DNA of 64,000 bases from Pelomyxa schiedti (lineage: Eukaryota; Protista; Evosea), in NCBI GenBank assembly GCA_020536535.1, contig JAHLWZ010000423.1, positions 124,001 through 188,000 on the forward strand, read 5' to 3'. The position numbers were made by a program, and so were the translations under genes. Below the pieces are notes generated by a model. The model worked only from the letters and a program-made list of their open reading frames with translations. It was not told where the DNA came from and did no database searches. Of the stretch, positions 17,012 to 57,018 are shown in pieces; within the stretch, counting starts at the first letter, position 1, and each line of letters starts with the position of its first letter.

Positions 17012-19393
17012 ATGCAAGCGGTTGTTGTGGGGGCGCCCGAATACAGTGGTATGTAAGCCCCCCCATAATGTGGAATTGCCACCAATAGTAACCACCAAAG
17101 ATACTGACCCTTCGTTATCTCTGAATCCGCTTCTGGTTGAGGATCACTACCACGCCTCTGTGCCTTTCCTCATTGAGTATTTCACAAATGGCAAAGTTGT
17201 TATGCGGCTATGTGTTTTTTCCTGTTATGTTTCGTTTCACTGTTGTGGGTGATGTAGTGTGTTTTCTTTTTGTTTCTGCTTTGTAATTTAACTATTTGGC
17301 TTGTGGGTGACATTCACTATTTATGTTATTGGAAGAATGCACACATGGCACACACCAAAGTTGAAGAAGGAAAAACAAGAGTGCACGTAATGCTTGGCGC
17401 TGTCTTTATAGGACAACTTTTGCAACGGGAACGTGGTGTTAAGTGCCACCTTGTTCACACTTACTGTAATTCTCCTGCTGCAACCTCTGATTTTGAGGAA
17501 AAAGTGGCTGCATCATCAATCGTTTTGATCAGTACTACACTGACAACAAATTGGTGGTTTACCGAGAAAATTGCGCAACATGCAAAAAGAGTTAATCCTC
17601 AGGCTACTGTAATCGCTGGAGGGTTGAGAGTTTTCAAGTGCTCCTGGTTCCTGCACCCCAAACTTCTTTCTTAGTTTCCTTAGGTCATACATATCCAAAG
17701 TCCTTGAGGACCAGCAACATGCAGTATTCCTCAATCCTACTCCAATCTTTGGTGCTCCATTTTCTAGTGCTGTTGATTTCCTTATAGTGAGTGTATATGG
17801 ACAGGCTACACTCCTTAGTCTCTACGACTCTTTGATTAATGTCATCACCTTGTTTTCTTCTGTATTGTAACACTCTAAAAGTCTGATCAAAGTTGGAAAT
17901 CTTTAAGTAATATTGCTTGGTATGACCACTCTCAAAGGAACTTTCACATAAACACCAGTACCAAATATTTATTGCCTTACTTTTGAAAACTTTTAACAGT
18001 AGAGGAGGAGCAACCAGTTGATTGCGAGGTGGATTGGTCGCTGGTGTCGTTTCCCCAATGGCCCAAGGTCTGGTATCCAGTACAAGTCGGGCAAGGCTGT
18101 CCATTAAAGTGTCTTTCCGTTTGATATCTTTACTAAGTAGTAACCCAGATGTGGATTCTGTGACTACGGTTCAGTTGCACCCAAAATGACTTGGTGTACC
18201 CCAGAATCAGTATTTCGTACACTAGAAAGTATTCCTCGTGATTCTGATGGATTTAGAAGAGTGCACCCACCCCCTTTCTGTTCTAAATAACGATTCCCAG
18301 GTCCTCTTCACTAATGACAATCTGTTCTCCAATAAAGTTTATGCGCAGACATTCTTCAAAGAACTTATCAGTCGGCACCTTGGTGTAGTGTGGAAGGGTT
18401 TTGTTAGGTTTTGCAGTTTATCTATAATCCTCCTCCAACACCATTCCGCCAGGGCGGACTCGATACAAGACGAAGAAATGGCTGACCTTCTGAAGTCCGC
18501 TGGTTGTAAGTTCGTGTTCATTGGTATGGAAAGTGGAGATGACACAGTGCTACGAAATATGCAGAAACATTGTACCGCTGAGGTAAATAGAAAGCAAGGA
18601 TAACATTTCCTAAAGAAAATAAAATAAAAAAGATGATTCGTAAATGTGTGTTACTCCTTCTTTCTAGGGGGATTATTGTCCGACTTTCACTTGTAGTCGG
18701 GTTCCCAGGGGAAACAAAGGTGAACTAGTGATCCTTCTCACTTCTCTCATTATATAATAATCAAAGCAAACCTGGCAAAATACAATGGATTTTTTAAATT
18801 CTATTCCTCCTATTGGGTGCATTGAAGTACAGGTATTCTTATCAGGATTCCAAACCGAAATCTAATACGTGAAAGCCCTTTCCGCTTGTTGTATCACCAC
18901 TTGCGCCCGTTGGACAGCAACCCATGCGGCAAACATACGGCCTGAAAGGACTATGGGCCACCTGGTCACACAATACAATGTCATCATCTGAAGCCAGTGC
19001 AATTGCAAAAACTACACCGGGAATGCTCTTACCACATCTATCTGTTTGCTATGATACAGGTGAGTACTCCTTTTATCTCAAACTTCTATTCTTTTTCTTT
19101 TTTTTCGCCCCTAAAGTTAGAATTCTAAAGATTCTATTACCGATGATATAGCACATATCAACACTGATTTCCGCAGAGAGGTCTATCGCCTTAGGAATCT
19201 TGTACTGCATTCCTTCTTTTTTTTTACTACAGCATTAACACATGGTGAATTTCAGCTTGCGCGGGAACAACGAACAACCGGCACAACAAACCCGCAATTA
19301 TGGGCACAGCTTGAATCAGCCGTTCTTTCCATGATCACCAGCGCTTCCCCCCCGCACACCCAGCCACCCACAAACGCAATCATGGGAGAGTAA
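17012..19393 (+). CDS. B12-binding domain radical SAM protein (class B radical SAM methyltransferase-like), many introns
   Basis: N-terminal Rossmann-like cobalamin domain (IVLISTT..IAQHAKRVNPQATVIAGG); CxxxCxxC motif GQGCPLK|CGFCD split by an intron near 18109-18148; FTNDNL; LLKSAGCKFVFIGMESGDDTVLRNMQK; LVVGFPGET. The start (MQAVVVGAPEYS) is inferred from splicing. Confidence 0.85.
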
Positions 19394-50217: not shown

Positions 50218-50362
50218 GGTCCCGCCGCTGTAAACAGCAGGCCAGCAATACAAGAAAAAAAAAAAAAAAAAAAGAAGATTTTCTGTGCAAGAAATTTGAA
50301 TGACTGTTGGGTAAGTCCAAGCACTTGGTTTGGCTAGTTTTGTGGTAGGCTAGGGTTTGCGT

Positions 50363-51665
50363 TCAGTCTATTTTTACTTGTTCTAAATGCCTGAGGTACA
50401 CATCCAAACCCAGCATGGGGGCAACATACCCAAACATGTTGAGAGTGAGAACCGCAATGACCCACCACTGAGAGCGGGAAACAAAAGTCCCTCCACCGCA
50501 CCCTTTCTGCACAGCCAGAGCTACCAGGCCCCCCTCAGGTTCAATCACAGAATTCTTGCCAACCGTTGTCTTGTAGCAGAGCCTCATGGCCTCGTCTGCA
50601 GTTGTCATAAACACCCTTACCCCAGAGCAGAGAGGAACTCGCCATTCCGTAAGACAAGCATCACAATCGGTACCCCTGCATGGAGCGTTAATGGAGGGTG
50701 AAACTAAAACAGTGTACGACCTCCCAGCAATTCTGCAGACCGCATAAAAGTTGGGAAGCTGGAGCCCGCTCATCACTAGCGGTGCTGCACACCAATGTTC
50801 GTAGACGTCATTTGAATAGGTCATGTTATCAAGGTCCACAGTTGCTTTGTTCGGTCCAAATTCGTATACAAGGCGATGCGGAACAGGCGATGGGGGTGAC
50901 ACACGGCCCTGTGAGGAGATTAGACAGGTAGCGAATGAGAAATATGTGGGTACATACTGTAGAAGAGTCAACACCAACTCGATGCACTCCCCACACCAGG
51001 GTGGAAACCCAAGGTGCAGTCTGCATTCCCAACAGCACAGAAGACACTACCATCACCAGTGCCCCAAGTACAACACACGCCACGCAGTACCACTTGCTTG
51101 CAGAGTCAAACCGGAAGTTTCCAATGTCCGGCACAGCCGCAGCGGTGGGAGAAGCAGGCTGTCCCCCAGATTGCTGTAGCCGCTTCTTCCATGCCCTCAT
51201 ATACAACCACTTTGCCGTCAGTCCCAGAACAGGGAACCCCAGCATGCTACTGAGCAAGACATGAGGAACGTTGCCCAGCATGTCATACGTCACGCTCAAC
51301 CACACTCCAATGCACCACATCAGGCACTCCCACAATCCAATCAGCACGGCAAGCCCAACAGCCACGCAACTCCTCACCCCGCGTTGCTGTTGCTGCCTCG
51401 CCAAAGTAGCTGCCATTCTTGGTGATGGAACTGGAGATGGCGCCGACGGAGATTCCACTGCTTCAGGCGACGGTGCCGTCGATGTGGGAATAGGATCGAG
51501 ATCTGTTGAAGTCGTTCTTGTGTCGTTCATTGGGGTGTCAACGCCCTCATCGTGAGATTCGTCAAGTAACTGTGATGAAGGAGCCGCCGCCGCACTGGAA
51601 CGTACTACTGATGAAGTTGTTAACACAGAAACAGTTTGGTTATCAACTGCGTTTTGGTCATCCAT
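50363..51665 (-). CDS. Multi-pass membrane protein of unknown function (2 exons)
   Basis: ORFs 50829-51665 and 50363-50977 join by a GT-AG intron (VDSST|GRVSPP); about 4 hydrophobic segments; Cys-rich loop. Confidence 0.65.
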
Positions 51666-51888
51666 CTCGTAACTAGTTGCACAACAACACGCTCTGCACT
51701 CCTCTTGTTTATTTACACAGTATGAATAAGAGATCTTGGCATAACAGAGGCAGCAGGGGAAAAAAAGCGCATGTGTCTACTTTACATCATCTCCTCCTTT
51801 CGAAAGGCAAAAAATAAGCAAAAAAAAGTAGAAATAGAATGACAGGAAATAGAATAGATCGGCTAAGTCTGTGTTGGAATTGAGGAAC

Positions 51889-54270
51889 TCAGTGGGTGAA
51901 GGCCATTGAGTCCACAAATAGGGATTGAAAGGTGGGATCCCCAGCTAGTTCTACATAGTGCACTGACTTTGCCCAGCTCCTAGCCCAGTCTCTGAGTCTG
52001 TGTGACACCAGGGCGGCAGCAGCACCATCACCAGCAGCATTCCCTATTGCTCTGACTGATTGTGGGTTCAGGCACTGAGGTAGCATCCCTATGGCTGTGG
52101 CGTGGACAGGGTCTAGGTAGCTTCCAAATGCTCCGGCGAGAAGAACTTCAGATAGGGCACACCCGCAAGAGCACCGGCTGATGTTGGAGTTGGTGCCGGT
52201 GTTGAAGCTGGTATCAGAAGTCTCCTGTGGATTTTGGTGTTCAAGATTGGAGATGGAATCTGGAGGGGAGCCTGTGGTTCCGCAGTTGGCAGCCCGAAGC
52301 AGCATCATGGAACCGGCATGCAGTGCGGCTTTTGCCAACTGTATTGCGCGAATATCTCGTGTAGTTATGGTCAGTTCGTGTCCGGATGTTGTCTCGTGTG
52401 CCCAAGCAAGTACAAACTCCCCGGTGGCGGCTGTGTGCTTTCTTAATCTCGATGGGTTGTTGTCGGCTGCTGCCAAACTTACAGCTTTGTGAGTAAAGAC
52501 AAATTTTCCGGTATTGGAAAGAATCCCAACTCTTAGTAGCTCAGAAACAACTTCTATGATTCCACTTCCGCAAATTCCGGAAGCTTTCAGGGTGCTGGAT
52601 TGGCTGATATCTGATGTTTGCCAGTCTTCTCCAATTAGTTTCAATGCAACTTCTAAGTTATCACCAATTCTTACCCTTTCAATTGCACCACGAGTGGCTC
52701 TCATCCCACAAGAAATATGTGCGCCCTCAAAGGCTGGGCCTGTTGGACTTGATGCTGCAAAAACCTTCCCTTCGTGCTCCAAGACCAGCTCACAATTAGT
52801 GCCAATATCAAGTATAAGTCTCACTCCTTTGCCTTTGACATCTCCATGTAAATGGTGAACTGCAATAGCTACACCTACTGTGTCGGAACCCACATGCCCT
52901 GCAACAGCCGGAAGCCAATGTACACTTCCACATGGCGCCAAAGAAAGTCTAACTTCACTGGCAGTTGTATTGACCGGGGAACTCAAAGGAAGTGCGAAAG
53001 GGGATTGGCCAAGTTCAACTGGCGGTATTCCAAGAAATATGCTCTCCATAACTGAGTTTCCAACAAAAACAGAATCAACTATATCCTCCGAAATTTGGGT
53101 TTGTCTGTAGATGCCAGATGTATTTCTTGACTCCATAATCTCACTTTCAGCTATCCGGGATCTTGCCTCCTTTACCATAGCATTTATAGCACCTATGACA
53201 CTTGAACGAAGAGTTTCAAGGGATTCGTTGGATTTCGAGGAAAATTCCACCCTCGTCATCACGTCGTCTCCCCATGACGCCTGTGGGTTTGGTGCCCCAA
53301 CGGAGGCAACTATGGTGGCCCTGTCCAAATCGCAGAGATGAAGTGCCAGTGTTGTGGTACCAACATCAACCGCAATCCCGTAATGTGCACTCCTGACCCC
53401 GGGCAGTACTTGTACAAGCTTTACTAGGCCTCCAGTTTGCCACGGTACCTCGGCTGGTGCTAAGATGGCTGTAACAGTCCATTCCGAGCTGCGCAAAACA
53501 CTCTGCAAGCTTCTTAGCAGAGGTAAACTAGTGGAAGGAGGAGGTAACATTTTTAAACCATGCTGCTGCAACACCGCATTGGCCAGCCTCTCAGAATCAC
53601 CACCAGAATTAATATCCTCAAGCGTAGGAGCCTTCAATCTGACCACTTTTTTCAATACCCTCGGCTCCTCCTCACTCCTCCCACTTGCAGCGGCCTGAGT
53701 AGCAGCCTCGGCAGTAGCAGATACAACTTTACAAGATACATGTTGGATAGTCCCAGGAGTATCACATCCCGCAGAATCCACTCTGTGTTCCGATCCCATA
53801 ACCGAATCCGAGGAGTTCGCCGAACTGCTAATACGGCCGACAGAAGTAGGCGCGCCATTCTCAGCACAACGACCGCCGAGAGTGGCGCCGCAGACATCGA
53901 CGACCAAAGTCTCCACATCTGGCGGCACGGTCATGCAGCACCCGAGCCTCAGCACCCCCTCGCTCGTGGCCCCGCTCTTGTGCCTCGCCCCCAGGTGCTC
54001 CTCCTCTGCGGGCGTCAGCACCGCCACACCCCCGATCCCGTGGGCGCTTGCACTTGGGGAGGAGGAGGAGGGGCCCTGGGGCGAGAGGACGCGGAGGAGG
54101 CACTTGCCGCAGCGGCCCCGGCCGCCGCAGGGCAGAAGCAAGTCGATCCCCGCGGCCTTGGCCACCGCCACCAGAGGGTCCCCGGGTTGGGCTTGCGCCC
54201 TTAGGCCGGAGGGCTGGAACACCACCGAAACCCGGCACAGCGACATTTTTTTTTTTGATGGGTCATTCAC
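51889..54270 (-). CDS. Reductive activator of corrinoid proteins (RACo; [2Fe-2S] ferredoxin + ASKHA ATPase, DUF4445), intronless
   Basis: PCGGRGRCGKC...RLGC ferredoxin; YGIAVDVGTTT, GDDVMTR, LDIGTNCEL, GPAFEG, GICGSGII, DIRAIQLAKAA, LAGAFGSY and GNAAGDG. An alternative start is ATG at 54246. Confidence 0.93.
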   Translation of the reverse strand: MNDPSKKKMSLCRVSVVFQPSGLRAQAQPGDPLVAVAKAAGIDLLLPCGGRGRCGKCLLRVLSPQGPSSSSPSASAHGIGGVAVLTPAEEEHLGARHKSGATSEGVLRLGCCMTVPPDVETLVVDVCGATLGGRCAENGAPTSVGRISSSANSSDSVMGSEHRVDSAGCDTPGTIQHVSCKVVSATAEAATQAAASGRSEEEPRVLKKVVRLKAPTLEDINSGGDSERLANAVLQQHGLKMLPPPSTSLPLLRSLQSVLRSSEWTVTAILAPAEVPWQTGGLVKLVQVLPGVRSAHYGIAVDVGTTTLALHLCDLDRATIVASVGAPNPQASWGDDVMTRVEFSSKSNESLETLRSSVIGAINAMVKEARSRIAESEIMESRNTSGIYRQTQISEDIVDSVFVGNSVMESIFLGIPPVELGQSPFALPLSSPVNTTASEVRLSLAPCGSVHWLPAVAGHVGSDTVGVAIAVHHLHGDVKGKGVRLILDIGTNCELVLEHEGKVFAASSPTGPAFEGAHISCGMRATRGAIERVRIGDNLEVALKLIGEDWQTSDISQSSTLKASGICGSGIIEVVSELLRVGILSNTGKFVFTHKAVSLAAADNNPSRLRKHTAATGEFVLAWAHETTSGHELTITTRDIRAIQLAKAALHAGSMMLLRAANCGTTGSPPDSISNLEHQNPQETSDTSFNTGTNSNISRCSCGCALSEVLLAGAFGSYLDPVHATAIGMLPQCLNPQSVRAIGNAAGDGAAAALVSHRLRDWARSWAKSVHYVELAGDPTFQSLFVDSMAFTH

Positions 54271-54292
54271 GGAAGCAACCTATGGGTAAGCT

Positions 54293-54411
54293 TGTTCTAG
54301 TGTACCTGAGAGTGCTTCTCCCCCCAAAGTCCGTACACAACGAGGTACCTTCTTCTTCAGAGGTCCTTCAAGTGAGAGCTACTTGAGGCAAGCTTGAAAG
54401 CAACTAGGTCA
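54293..54411. ncRNA. Candidate structured intergenic element C
   Basis: CTAGT/ACTAG closing stem; GTAC/GTAC arm with GAGA/TCTC; ACCT/AGGT; CTTCAAGT/ACTTGAGG. Confidence 0.35.
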
Positions 54412-54485
54412 GTTCCGAAAAAAAGCTTTTGGTTTTGTTCTAACCACAACAGACAAAAAAAAAAAAGCAAACAACTGTAAGTGCA

Positions 54486-57018
54486 ATGTCAGACGCGCAG
54501 GAGCCACCAAACAAGCGACCCCGTTCCAGTACTAGTGATGGCGGTGCCGGAACTACAATGTCAACAAGGCCTACAACATCCACATCATCCACCACGTCGA
54601 CAAGTGCTCGCTCTTCATTGGCGTCACCCAATGGTATTTTCTTCTTATTCATGTCTTTTTTTTTTTGATTAAGCTTGCGAATTAACAATTTTGGAGATTT
54701 GGATTCTAGCCCACACCTGTTGGCCGATTGCACACTGTGCCACAAGAAATTCAACGTTGAGATTCCCCCTATGTTGTTGTCACCATGTGGTCACACAGTG
54801 TGTTCTGTGTGCTGGGCAAGTGCATCAAGGAAAAACCCTCGTGTGTGCCCAGTGTGCAGGGTCGAGGTCTCAGTGTTCAAGAAGAACGAGATTGCATCAA
54901 ACTTGCTTGAGCTTTTACAGGCTGTGGGGTGTGGAACGAGCTCTGCTTCTTCACATAACGCCAATGATACAACAAAGTGCGAGGAGTGCAAAACGAATGA
55001 AGCCACTGTCTGGTGTAAAGCTGAGGAAATTGCTCTATGCTCTAGTTGTGATTCTGGGCTACACCGGTCACAAGTCCGCAAGTTGCATGAGAGAGTCCCT
55101 TTCGAAACCTCCATGAACCCAAAGCGAGCTGGGACGGAACCAAAGTGCCCACTGCACCCAAAGAAAGATCTTGATTTGTGGTGTGAAAGTGACAAGGTGT
55201 GTGCATATATTACAATTAATTTTTATGTTTTATTCTCATTTCATGTATACAAATAGGAGCTTTGTTGCCTTCTGTGCAAAGAAGAGAGCCACAAAAACCA
55301 TACGATCCTGCTCCGGGACGATGCTCATCGCGGAGCTATGGAGACAATGACACAAACGTCAGAGAAAATCAAGAAAGTAATTAAGTCCCCAGGTTGGAAA
55401 GTTGTGGAAGATACTGCAACCCTCAATCAATTGAGGGCTGATGTGAGAGGCACCAGAGACACTATTGAGACTTTATTTTCCCGTTTTATCGAACAACTGC
55501 ATAATCGAAAGGCTGTGATTCTTAGGCAACTTGCGGCAATGGAAGAAAATTTAGTGCATGAACTCACTGGTTTTCCAGGTCATACTCTGATTTGTTTTCC
55601 TTTAACTGATAAAACAAAAAATAGCTGAAATGGTGTTCAGAAAAGAAAAATTCCAAGAAATCGATGATGCAATAGGATACCTCAAGGGGTGTGACAATAA
55701 TTTTTCAGTGTTGCAGATGCTCTCCCTCCTTAAAGAGAAGGAATGTGCCAAGAAAAGTGGGGATCTTGGAGTCGGAGACTTTCTTGGTGAAGCACAAAAA
55801 GCCCTGCCGAAGGCAGTGGAACTGGGCAAGCTGAACTTTGTGGCTGACATCAAGGCACTGGAAGATACCATTTCTAATTTCGGGCTCTTTGTCTTTCCTT
55901 CTTTGAAATTGGAGTGTATTGCTCATGGCACAACAGCCGTACTCACATTCAAGCCGACAGCACCTCCCGTCAAGAACCCAGATTTCCGGTACTCATATCA
56001 ATGCGAGTTATTATGTGGAACGGAAGTTGTACAACATTGGACTGCTACCGGCGGCAGTAGTCAACTTGAGGAACTTGAACCAGATAGAGAATTCGTTGTG
56101 CGGGTGAGAATGATCATTGGGAATCTCGATCATCTGGGAAACCAACCACATAATGCTTCCGGGTGGATACAGACCAGTTTCTCTACGCAGCCACGCAAAG
56201 CCTTCACAACACCAGGCCAACACACATTCACAGTTCCAGCCGGCGTGAGATCCATCAACGCCACTGTGATTGGAGGTGGTGGTGCTGGCGGATCCTGGTG
56301 CAGCAGCAAGCCACAGACAGGGACTGATGGAGGTGATTCAATGATTGAGGGGATTGTCACAGCCGGAGGTGGAAAAGCAGGAAGCTCCCAGCCAGGCGGC
56401 AGCAAGGGTGGAAAAGGAACAACAGCAAACGGTGGTGATGGCGGAAAATCTGCTGAGGATGGCACCAGTGGGTCACATGGAGGTGGTGGTGGTGCCGGTG
56501 GGGAGAATGGTGGATCTGACACAGGAGCACTATGTTACAGGAAGCTAGGTGGGGCAACGGACTGGAAGTATGCCGGCAGTGGTGGGCATGGAAGGGGAGG
56601 AGTAGAGCGTGGCAGGAAGAACTCCTCAAGTTCTGGTCAAGCTTCCTGCAAGCCACATGAAAAAAGGGTGGGTGGATTTCCAGGGTGGAACTATGGTGGT
56701 GGAGGGGGAGGGGCATTCAGCTGTGGTGGGGGTGGCGGTGGTTATTCTTCAGTGAAGAGGCACAGAGTCACTCCCGGGGAGAGACTGAACATCGTTGTTG
56801 GTGAAGGTGGGAAGCAGGCAAAGGGGGAGGATAGTACTCGGGAGGGTGGGCCAGGTGGTTGTGGCTTTGTCTTGATCTCTTGGGCCTCCACACGTGGAGA
56901 GGGCAGCATGGAGGAGAGTAGTGACAGTAGTGACAGCGACAGCAATGACAGTGCCAGTGGGAGTGGGAGTGGGAGTGGCAGTGGCAGTGGGAGTGGGAGT
57001 GACAGTGACAGTGAGTGA
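54486..57018 (+). CDS. TRIM-like protein: RING, two B-boxes, coiled coil, FN3-like and glycine-rich domain
   Basis: RING CTLC..CGHTVCSVC..CPVC; B-boxes CEEC..C..CSSCD..H..H and CPLH..WCESD; FN3-like LEPDREFVVRVR; Gly-rich FTTPGQHTFTVPAGVRSINATVIGGGGAGG..GGCGFVLISW; SG/SD tail. Confidence 0.88.

Follow-up and report, generated by a model that had tools for sequence, protein, structure and literature searches.

Eukaryotes are thought to rescue oxidized B12 by means of a diflavin reductase. Methionine synthase reductase (MTRR), together with the reactivation domain of methionine synthase (MetH), addresses the same chemical problem as the prokaryotic corrinoid reductive activases, i.e., the rescue of Co(II)-cobalamin; however, MTRR, a diflavin NADPH reductase, is not related to these activases, functions in S-adenosylmethionine (SAM)-dependent reductive methylation, and uses no ATP. 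Among the prokaryotic activases, RACo of Carboxydothermus hydrogenoformans activates the corrinoid protein CoFeSP of the Wood-Ljungdahl pathway, and RamA of Methanosarcina, which activates methylamine methyltransferase corrinoid proteins by ATP-dependent reduction of Co(II) to Co(I) and the clients of which are MttB-family systems, has C-terminal [4Fe-4S] clusters instead of an N-terminal [2Fe-2S] domain. RamA-like proteins with Fer2 and DUF4445 domains are, together with DUF1638, genetically required for methionine synthesis in Phaeobacter and Desulfovibrio, and DUF1638 has the same presence/absence pattern in alpha-Proteobacteria as the RamA-like protein (PMC5764234). According to a 2025 study, MtgB/MtgC/MtgD/MtgE with RamA and DUF1638 links the demethylation of glycine betaine in Ruegeria to the synthesis of methionine, while cobalamin-dependent methyltransferases in eukaryotes function solely as methionine synthase (PMC12478193). 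Here, we present an analysis of a RACo/RamA-like gene in the anaerobic amoeba Pelomyxa schiedti. The gene lies at 51889-54246 on the minus strand of a window of 64,000 nt (the whole stretch of DNA analyzed, from contig JAHLWZ010000423.1), and we describe its product, its residence in the amoeba genome, and the genes for its possible partners.

The open reading frame (ORF) extends over 51889-54270 and encodes 793 aa when counted from a GTG codon; the first ATG, at 54244-54246 just after an A-rich run, is a usable eukaryotic start and gives a protein of 785 aa that ends at the TGA codon at 51889-51891. Its reading frame of 2355 nt is open without a stop or frameshift. Homology to the relatives runs co-linearly from residue 5 through the final one, from which we conclude that the gene has no intron and, based on the ORF, the Pfam domains, and a match to a solved structure, that the coding sequence is complete. 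The 785-aa protein has the canonical domain order, and each domain scores above its gathering cut-off: an N-terminal plant-type [2Fe-2S] ferredoxin domain (Fer2; residues 5-118, 53893-54234; 24.1 bits versus 21, E 3.6e-5), RACo_linker (PF17650; residues 194-284, 53395-53667; 44.6 bits versus 26.2, E 1.3e-11), Raco_middle (PF17651; residues 289-463, 52858-53382; 131 bits versus 26.8, E 4.1e-38), and the C-terminal ASKHA ATPase domain RACo_C_ter (PF14574; residues 476-785, 51892-52821; 225.7 bits versus 27, E 7.1e-67). In an alignment of 22 sequences (the Pelomyxa protein and 21 relatives), the [2Fe-2S] ligands Cys40, Cys46, Cys49, and Cys103 are in invariant columns, as are the DVGTTT motif in the middle domain (phosphate-1; 53350-53367) and the DIGTNCE, SSPTGPAFEGA, GICGSGIIE, AGAFGSY, and GNAAGDGA motifs in the ATPase domain; the phosphate-1, phosphate-2, and adenosine motifs of the ASKHA fold are all present. 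The protein differs from its relatives by five Ser/Thr/Gly/Ala-rich insertions (residues 70-76, 119-176, 369-385, 583-589, and 657-696) that are common to no relative and coincide with low-confidence segments of an AlphaFold2 model. The first adds 7 aa to the ferredoxin domain. The second is part of a lineage-specific Ser/Gly/Ala-rich segment (residues 119-192, 53671-53892) that is predicted to be disordered (predicted local distance difference test [pLDDT] score of 23-33) and stands in place of the conserved bacterial 'PEESQARKQVVRKAA'; and the last is a 40-aa Ser/Thr/Asn-rich insertion in the ASKHA domain (52159-52278) that is also predicted to be disordered. Thus, the first-pass annotation, made from the letters alone, was correct in describing a complete, intron-free [2Fe-2S]-ASKHA ORF with all family motifs and with Ser/Ala-rich insertions. 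Compared with the bacterial proteins, the Pelomyxa protein is not extended at its N-terminus and is, by default, presumed to be cytosolic.

The fold agrees with the family assignment. Using phmmer, C. hydrogenoformans RACo (PDB 3zyy) is matched at E 2.9e-58 in three stretches that span all domains. The core of the AlphaFold2 model has a pLDDT of 80-94, and its best Foldseek matches are the RACo structures 3zyy and 4c1n (E 2e-43 to 8e-40; TM 0.67-0.79), while the next fold, that of generic ASKHA kinases, follows only at E 1e-6. RACo of C. hydrogenoformans thus has the same fold, domain order, and [2Fe-2S] and ASKHA motifs; however, it is only 24-27% identical to the Pelomyxa protein. Ser398 of RACo aligns within the SSPTGPAFEG motif that is conserved in the subfamily of the Pelomyxa protein, which presumably uses the same ATP-driven uphill electron transfer as RACo. 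The Pelomyxa protein is not AcsV (NCBIfam NF040756; 292 bits, below the cut-off of 800), nor is it RamA proper (TIGR04270; 84.8 bits, below the cut-off of 500), although it shares the ASKHA/DUF4445 core with Methanosarcina RamA. Rather, the four-domain architecture and the highest identities (35-44%) are shared with the RamA-like proteins of the split methionine synthase/MtgBCDE systems, i.e., Phaeobacter inhibens PGA1_c15200 and Ruegeria pomeroyi SPO2041 (PMC5764234, PMC12478193), which were represented in our comparisons by homologues from Stappiaceae, Roseobacteraceae, and Paracoccaceae, and with homologues from Chloroflexota. In contrast to these bacterial proteins, the Pelomyxa activase lacks a basic C-terminal tail in addition to carrying the five disordered insertions.

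The gene neighborhoods of the bacterial relatives point in the same direction. Among 80 named bacterial loci, we found within 7 kb of the RACo gene a small corrinoid protein in 52, a pterin-binding methyltransferase in 50, an S-methyl_trans gene in 14 (mostly in Chloroflexota), a URO-D gene in four, and an MttB gene in three. In the nearest relatives, the genes on either side of RACo encode a methyltransferase of the URO-D or pterin-binding type, a small protein that binds B12, and a homocysteine S-methyltransferase. By their gene content, these neighborhoods are those of the split methionine synthase/MtgBCDE system and not those of CoFeSP or methanogen operons. In Anaerolineales bacterium UBA6055, an operon (L042; DIYL01000033.1, 2605-10761) contains co-directional genes for URO-D, a URO-D/thioredoxin protein, a CobW-like GTPase, a corrinoid protein, RACo, S-methyl_trans, and DUF1638 but lacks a pterin-binding module. 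This operon shows that bacterial versions near the Pelomyxa gene set exist, and it looks like an uncharacterized, folate-independent bacterial variant of the split methionine synthase. The first-pass annotation had placed the protein in an anaerobic corrinoid methyl-transfer pathway of the kind served by CoFeSP, O-demethylase, or methylamine methyltransferase activators. The part of this proposal concerning methyl transfer is supported, and candidate partner genes are present (below); the subfamily is not, as the closest one is neither that of the CoFeSP nor of the O-demethylase nor of the methanogen RamA activators but that of the split methionine synthase/MtgBCDE activases. Because activases of this subfamily are also found in aerobic bacteria (PMC5764234, PMC12478193), the pathway is more likely anabolic, yielding methionine, than energy yielding.

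All relatives that we found are prokaryotic, the nearest ones at 35-44% identity, and within a collection of 5.8 billion proteins, no sequence exceeds about 39-44% identity to the activase, in line with the early suggestion of a lateral acquisition from bacteria. When placed in a tree among 81 sequences from bacteria, the activase is on the Chloroflexota/Nitrospirota/Bacillota side of a split with 100% support and falls outside a clade of 48 Pseudomonadota and two Actinomycetota, with a terminal branch of 3.87; in a tree of 50 rows, it is inside a Chloroflexota-rich set of 19 rows (support 95/96). Based on these trees, the donor was bacterial and probably Chloroflexota/Anaerolineae-like. The activase and the genes for the corrinoid protein, the MtgE-like protein, and the MttB-superfamily protein described below all appear to have a Chloroflexota-type affinity. 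The RACo gene alone is insufficient proof of such a donor; we rejected an assignment of the donor phylum based on this gene by itself, because a placement with Proteobacteria survives the approximately unbiased (AU) test (p = 0.064). We suggest that the transfer is old, given the length of the branch, the presence of the insertions, and a composition that has been ameliorated. We also considered whether unusually long metagenomic matches (P0002, P0005, P0020, and P0059) might be hidden eukaryotic orthologues, and rejected this idea, as their extra length consists of different, Arg/Glu-rich inserts and of terminal extensions.

The activase gene is a resident nuclear gene and not a chimera. Contigs assembled separately from three DNA runs fall on the locus. 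Among them, a contig from run X1 covers 50286-56000 and a contig from run X2 covers 50841-54471; X1 and X2 are separate single-cell DNA libraries, each assembled independently, and both contigs contain the whole ORF and both flanks with zero differences. The ORF has a GC content of 0.53 and a GC content at third codon positions (GC3) of 0.49, compared with a GC3 of 0.46-0.52 in neighboring host exons. We base the conclusion of residence on this contiguity in separate DNA runs, the host-like GC3, the identity of at most 44% to any prokaryotic sequence, and the insertions; an assembly chimera with bacterial DNA, which had been named beforehand as the observation that would overturn the first-pass reading, was not found. 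The 3' part of the gene is also transcribed; expression had been the second question at the outset. In a single-cell RNA-Seq run on a separate sample from the same study as the DNA, two contigs (51847-52600 and 52615-52975, minus strand) are co-linear with the DNA and extend 42 nt beyond the stop codon. In the same run, no RNA contig falls on the flanks or on the neighboring genes, which argues for a transcript rather than carried-over DNA. At position 51883 in the 3' untranslated region, six bases after the stop codon, one base is missing in the RNA contig relative to all three DNA runs; this could come from an error in assembly or from an allelic or strain difference.

We searched the P. schiedti assembly (52,367,397 bases in 5337 contigs) for further RACo-family genes and for candidate partners. 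The activase is the only RACo-family locus in this genome. The spliced genes for the corrinoid protein, the MttB-like protein, MetH, and the URO-D proteins were examined exon by exon or as unaltered in-frame read-through. On contig C996, we found a gene for a stand-alone corrinoid protein, in which a DxHxxG motif accompanies the domains B12-binding_2 and B12-binding. Its gene has three canonical GT-AG introns, and removing them yields a protein that is co-linear with its bacterial counterpart to the stop codon; in a tree calculated without the last exon, this protein clusters with corrinoid proteins that adjoin URO-D or MttB genes (99% support). Directly after the last exon, at ~900-1350 of C996 (extracted locus L003), are tRNA-like sequences, e.g., GCTCTGGTAGCTCAGTTGG... 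The presence of this protein, together with the C815, C286, and MetH genes described below, answers the question, raised at the outset, of whether the genome holds any candidate corrinoid client.

Contig C286 (18588-19535, L023) contains an intronless S-methyl_trans gene, the product of which shares 45% identity, along its whole length, with the product of a gene adjoining a bacterial RACo gene and 50% identity with an Anaerolineales copy; in a tree, it is excluded from the proteobacterial clade (100/100). The top NCBIfam match is PRK07534; we infer that this is the Sinorhizobium 'Bhmt' type, which has been reinterpreted as MtgE (PMC12478193). Compared with PDB structures, the protein resembles the MetH homocysteine module more closely than it does BHMT or HMT. 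The gene is a GC-rich island in a contig with eukaryotic-looking flanks. A second intronless S-methyl_trans gene on C191 (73020-74015, L024) has the same appearance; GC3 is 0.88 in the C286 gene and 0.82 in the C191 gene, while the flanks have 40-49% GC. These islands could reflect an expression-linked codon bias or a more recent acquisition. We rejected the C191 gene as a pathway partner, because its product has merely 21% identity to the operon type.

Contig C815 has a complete MttB-superfamily gene in three exon blocks without an in-frame stop, and its product is 50-56% identical to bacterial homologues, one of which is named as Chloroflexota. It is equidistant from the structures of the trimethylamine methyltransferase MttB and the glycine betaine methyltransferase MtgB, and this comparison favors neither substrate. 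Finally, the genome has at least seven URO-D-family loci, most of them spliced, for which NCBIfam scores favor MtaA/CmuA over HemE (L009-L016). For example, the C721 gene (110740-111489; L010 1135-2268, plus strand) has the NCBI entry 'uroporphyrinogen decarboxylase [Pelomyxa schiedti]' and scores better as MtaA/CmuA than as HemE; its closest relatives are Anaerolineae proteins without an assigned function, the genes of which adjoin sugar ABC transporter genes. The Pelomyxa URO-D paralogues are equally far from operon-linked and unlinked types, and we regard them only as candidate methyl-donor methyltransferases. Compared with the MtgBCDE system, Pelomyxa thus has counterparts of the corrinoid protein, of MtgE, and of an MttB/MtgB-family gene. 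However, in contrast to the bacterial operons, these genes are nuclear and dispersed, and the partner genes contain spliceosomal introns.

On balance, we consider it fairly probable that the nuclear gene was acquired long ago from bacteria, most likely Chloroflexota/Anaerolineae-like ones, and that it encodes a RamA-like, ATP-dependent corrinoid reductive activase whose client is most likely the C996 carrier. We infer the catalytic activity, the protein reactivated, the methyl donor, and the electron donor by comparison with the described systems, and the activase could function as follows. The N-terminal [2Fe-2S] cluster would accept a single electron from a donor of low potential, for which ferredoxin from pyruvate:ferredoxin oxidoreductase is a plausible candidate, and the middle and ASKHA domains would dock on a corrinoid protein that has been oxidized to inactive Co(II). 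Binding and hydrolysis of ATP by the ASKHA domain would then drive the uphill electron transfer and restore Co(I). During turnover, the MttB-like enzyme from C815 would methylate Co(I) on the C996 carrier, possibly using a quaternary amine as the donor, and the MtgE-like enzyme from C286 would move the methyl group from the carrier to homocysteine to form methionine, with the activase rescuing the carrier after occasional oxidation. According to this model, the whole set would represent the split methionine synthase/MtgBCE module of bacteria in a eukaryotic form, with its genes dispersed and bearing introns. More tentatively, and with doubt slightly outweighing confidence, we propose that P. 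schiedti has a complete modular pathway of bacterial origin for cobalamin-dependent methyl transfer that includes MttB-family and possibly MtaA/CmuA-like enzymes, the corrinoid protein, the MtgE-like enzyme, and the activase, and that makes methionine from environmental methylated compounds (e.g., quaternary amines) with cobamides from methanogen and bacterial endosymbionts.

The protein clearly belongs to a known family, and the novelty lies in the host, the accompanying pathway genes, and their domestication. In the two P. schiedti papers and the supplements of the genome paper, the B12-dependent methionine synthase is the only such enzyme mentioned. In the searchable literature, DUF4445 occurs only in a paper on bacteria (PMC5764234), and we found no link of corrinoid proteins, MttB, or RamA to a eukaryote. 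If our interpretation is true, P. schiedti would provide the first example known from eukaryotes of a non-MetH corrinoid methyltransferase system as well as of an ATP-driven corrinoid reductive activase, and an anaerobic amoeba holds the bacterial solution to B12 rescue instead of, or besides, a diflavin reductase, with most of the pathway genes spliced and nuclear. If the pathway works, modular B12 methyl transfer extends to eukaryotes, and the dependence of the amoeba on B12-producing endosymbionts would have a concrete metabolic reason. A working pathway would also provide a tractable case of genes of the same affinity that match one bacterial operon type and have been domesticated and scattered in the nucleus.

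Several observations weigh against this interpretation. The terminal branch of the activase is very long (2.5-3.9 substitutions per site across trees), and forcing the activase with the proteobacterial clade is not rejected by the AU test mentioned above. Of the 167 columns that show no variation among 21 bacterial relatives, the activase retains 129, compared with at least 91% in each bacterial sequence; given this loss and the very long branch, its function may have shifted. RNA coverage is limited to the 3' 1.1 kb (51847-52975), and the region of the Fe-S domain has no RNA contig. Similarly, the public gene model P0001 begins at Met330, so that the Fe-S domain, the linker, and the phosphate-1 motif are missing from it; this truncation may be the reason that the gene was overlooked. 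The partner genes are on separate contigs, and their link to the activase consists of co-occurrence and bacterial synteny; moreover, the nearest bacterial relatives of the C815 MttB-like and C721 URO-D genes do not adjoin corrinoid genes. A canonical five-module MetH on C73 (22119-26974) is complete, including the SAM-dependent reactivation domain, and provides a possible alternative or extra client. Lastly, our six-frame search, which misses domains split into short exons, detected neither a PF07796 match for DUF1638 nor a stand-alone MtgD, the latter using PF00809 or a bacterial MtgD-like query. The same search with the same limit also found neither MTHFR nor MMACHC, and in the case of MMACHC, the control genomes were equally silent. 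MetH served as a control for such negatives: its gene is cut into many very short exons, with at least seven of 25-50 aa each in the pterin module alone, and the six-frame Pfam search of the genome missed this module entirely. Because the search misses domains split in this way, claims of absence in the Pelomyxa genome carry little weight.

MetH is also central to the strongest alternative, according to which the activase acts mainly or only on the canonical MetH and replaces the diflavin MTRR, which an anaerobe may lack. The genome paper reported the B12-dependent MetH (PMC8887013), in agreement with the complete gene on C73. RamA-like proteins are required for methionine synthesis in Desulfovibrio, and in some bacteria, a RamA-like protein occurs together with a MetH in which the standard reactivation domain is present (PMC5764234). 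Moreover, no clear MTRR was found among the strong FAD_binding_1 loci in Pelomyxa. There are two such loci, and each has a long ORF on the minus strand for the C-terminal part of an [FeFe]-hydrogenase fused to a cytochrome P450 reductase (CPR)-type diflavin reductase (C594:7087-10713, L115 ORF 1153-3315; C579:3578-7240, L116 ORF 733-3159); neither resembles MTRR. However, a third, weak FAD_binding_1 locus exists on C730, and because negatives are unreliable in this genome, the absence of MTRR is unsafe. We also considered a MetH that lacks the reactivation domain, as in Desulfovibrio, and rejected this possibility, because PF02965 is present in three exon blocks; Pelomyxa MetH thus retains its own SAM-dependent means of reactivation. 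Moreover, the genome has a stand-alone corrinoid protein that looks like a cognate client, along with an MtgE-like gene of the same bacterial affinity. We therefore regard MetH as the main or sole client as unlikely, albeit deserving of serious attention, and favor the C996 carrier.

It is also improbable, in our view, that the gene is a decaying or neofunctionalized relic that is transcribed but no longer functions as a corrinoid activase. The changes at 38 of the 167 otherwise invariant positions (23%), including radical ones such as F58G, H402S, W543Q, D528G, and R743A, fit such a relic, as do the very long terminal branch, the truncated public model, and the failure to find DUF1638 in a search that misses short-exon domains. 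In contrast, the frame is open over its 2355 nt, all cluster ligands and nucleotide-binding motifs are intact, the core is predicted to fold with confidence, the gene is transcribed, and the partner genes are intact, which argues for an activase still in use. We attach even less probability to a broad role in which the activase returns Co(II) to Co(I) in the bacterial-type B12 enzymes of the amoeba at large. Several B12-binding domain matches exist genome-wide, including a weak one in the window at ~17390-17626 (within 17012-19393); however, no RACo-family protein that serves radical SAM enzymes is known, the genes linked to the bacterial relatives are those for small corrinoid proteins and not radical SAM genes, and the spacing of 35 kb to the B12-binding gene in the window is meaningless in a eukaryote. 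Finally, although amplified single cells were the source of the assembly and the amoeba harbors abundant prokaryotic symbionts (PMC8887013, PMC10579272), contamination or chimerism is effectively refuted by the contiguity of the ORF with both flanks, the GC3, the identity ceiling, and the eukaryote-style low-complexity insertions, and RNA from a separate sample covers the gene on a host contig of 252 kb.

The upstream neighbor of the activase gene, which lies outside the proposed system, is eukaryotic in character. It is found at 54675-57018 on the plus strand and, based on the ORF list and a domain search, encodes a protein with a RING domain, a B-box, and a glycine-rich part over three reading frames, so that the gene presumably has introns; this agrees with the early description of an intron-containing eukaryotic gene next to the activase gene.

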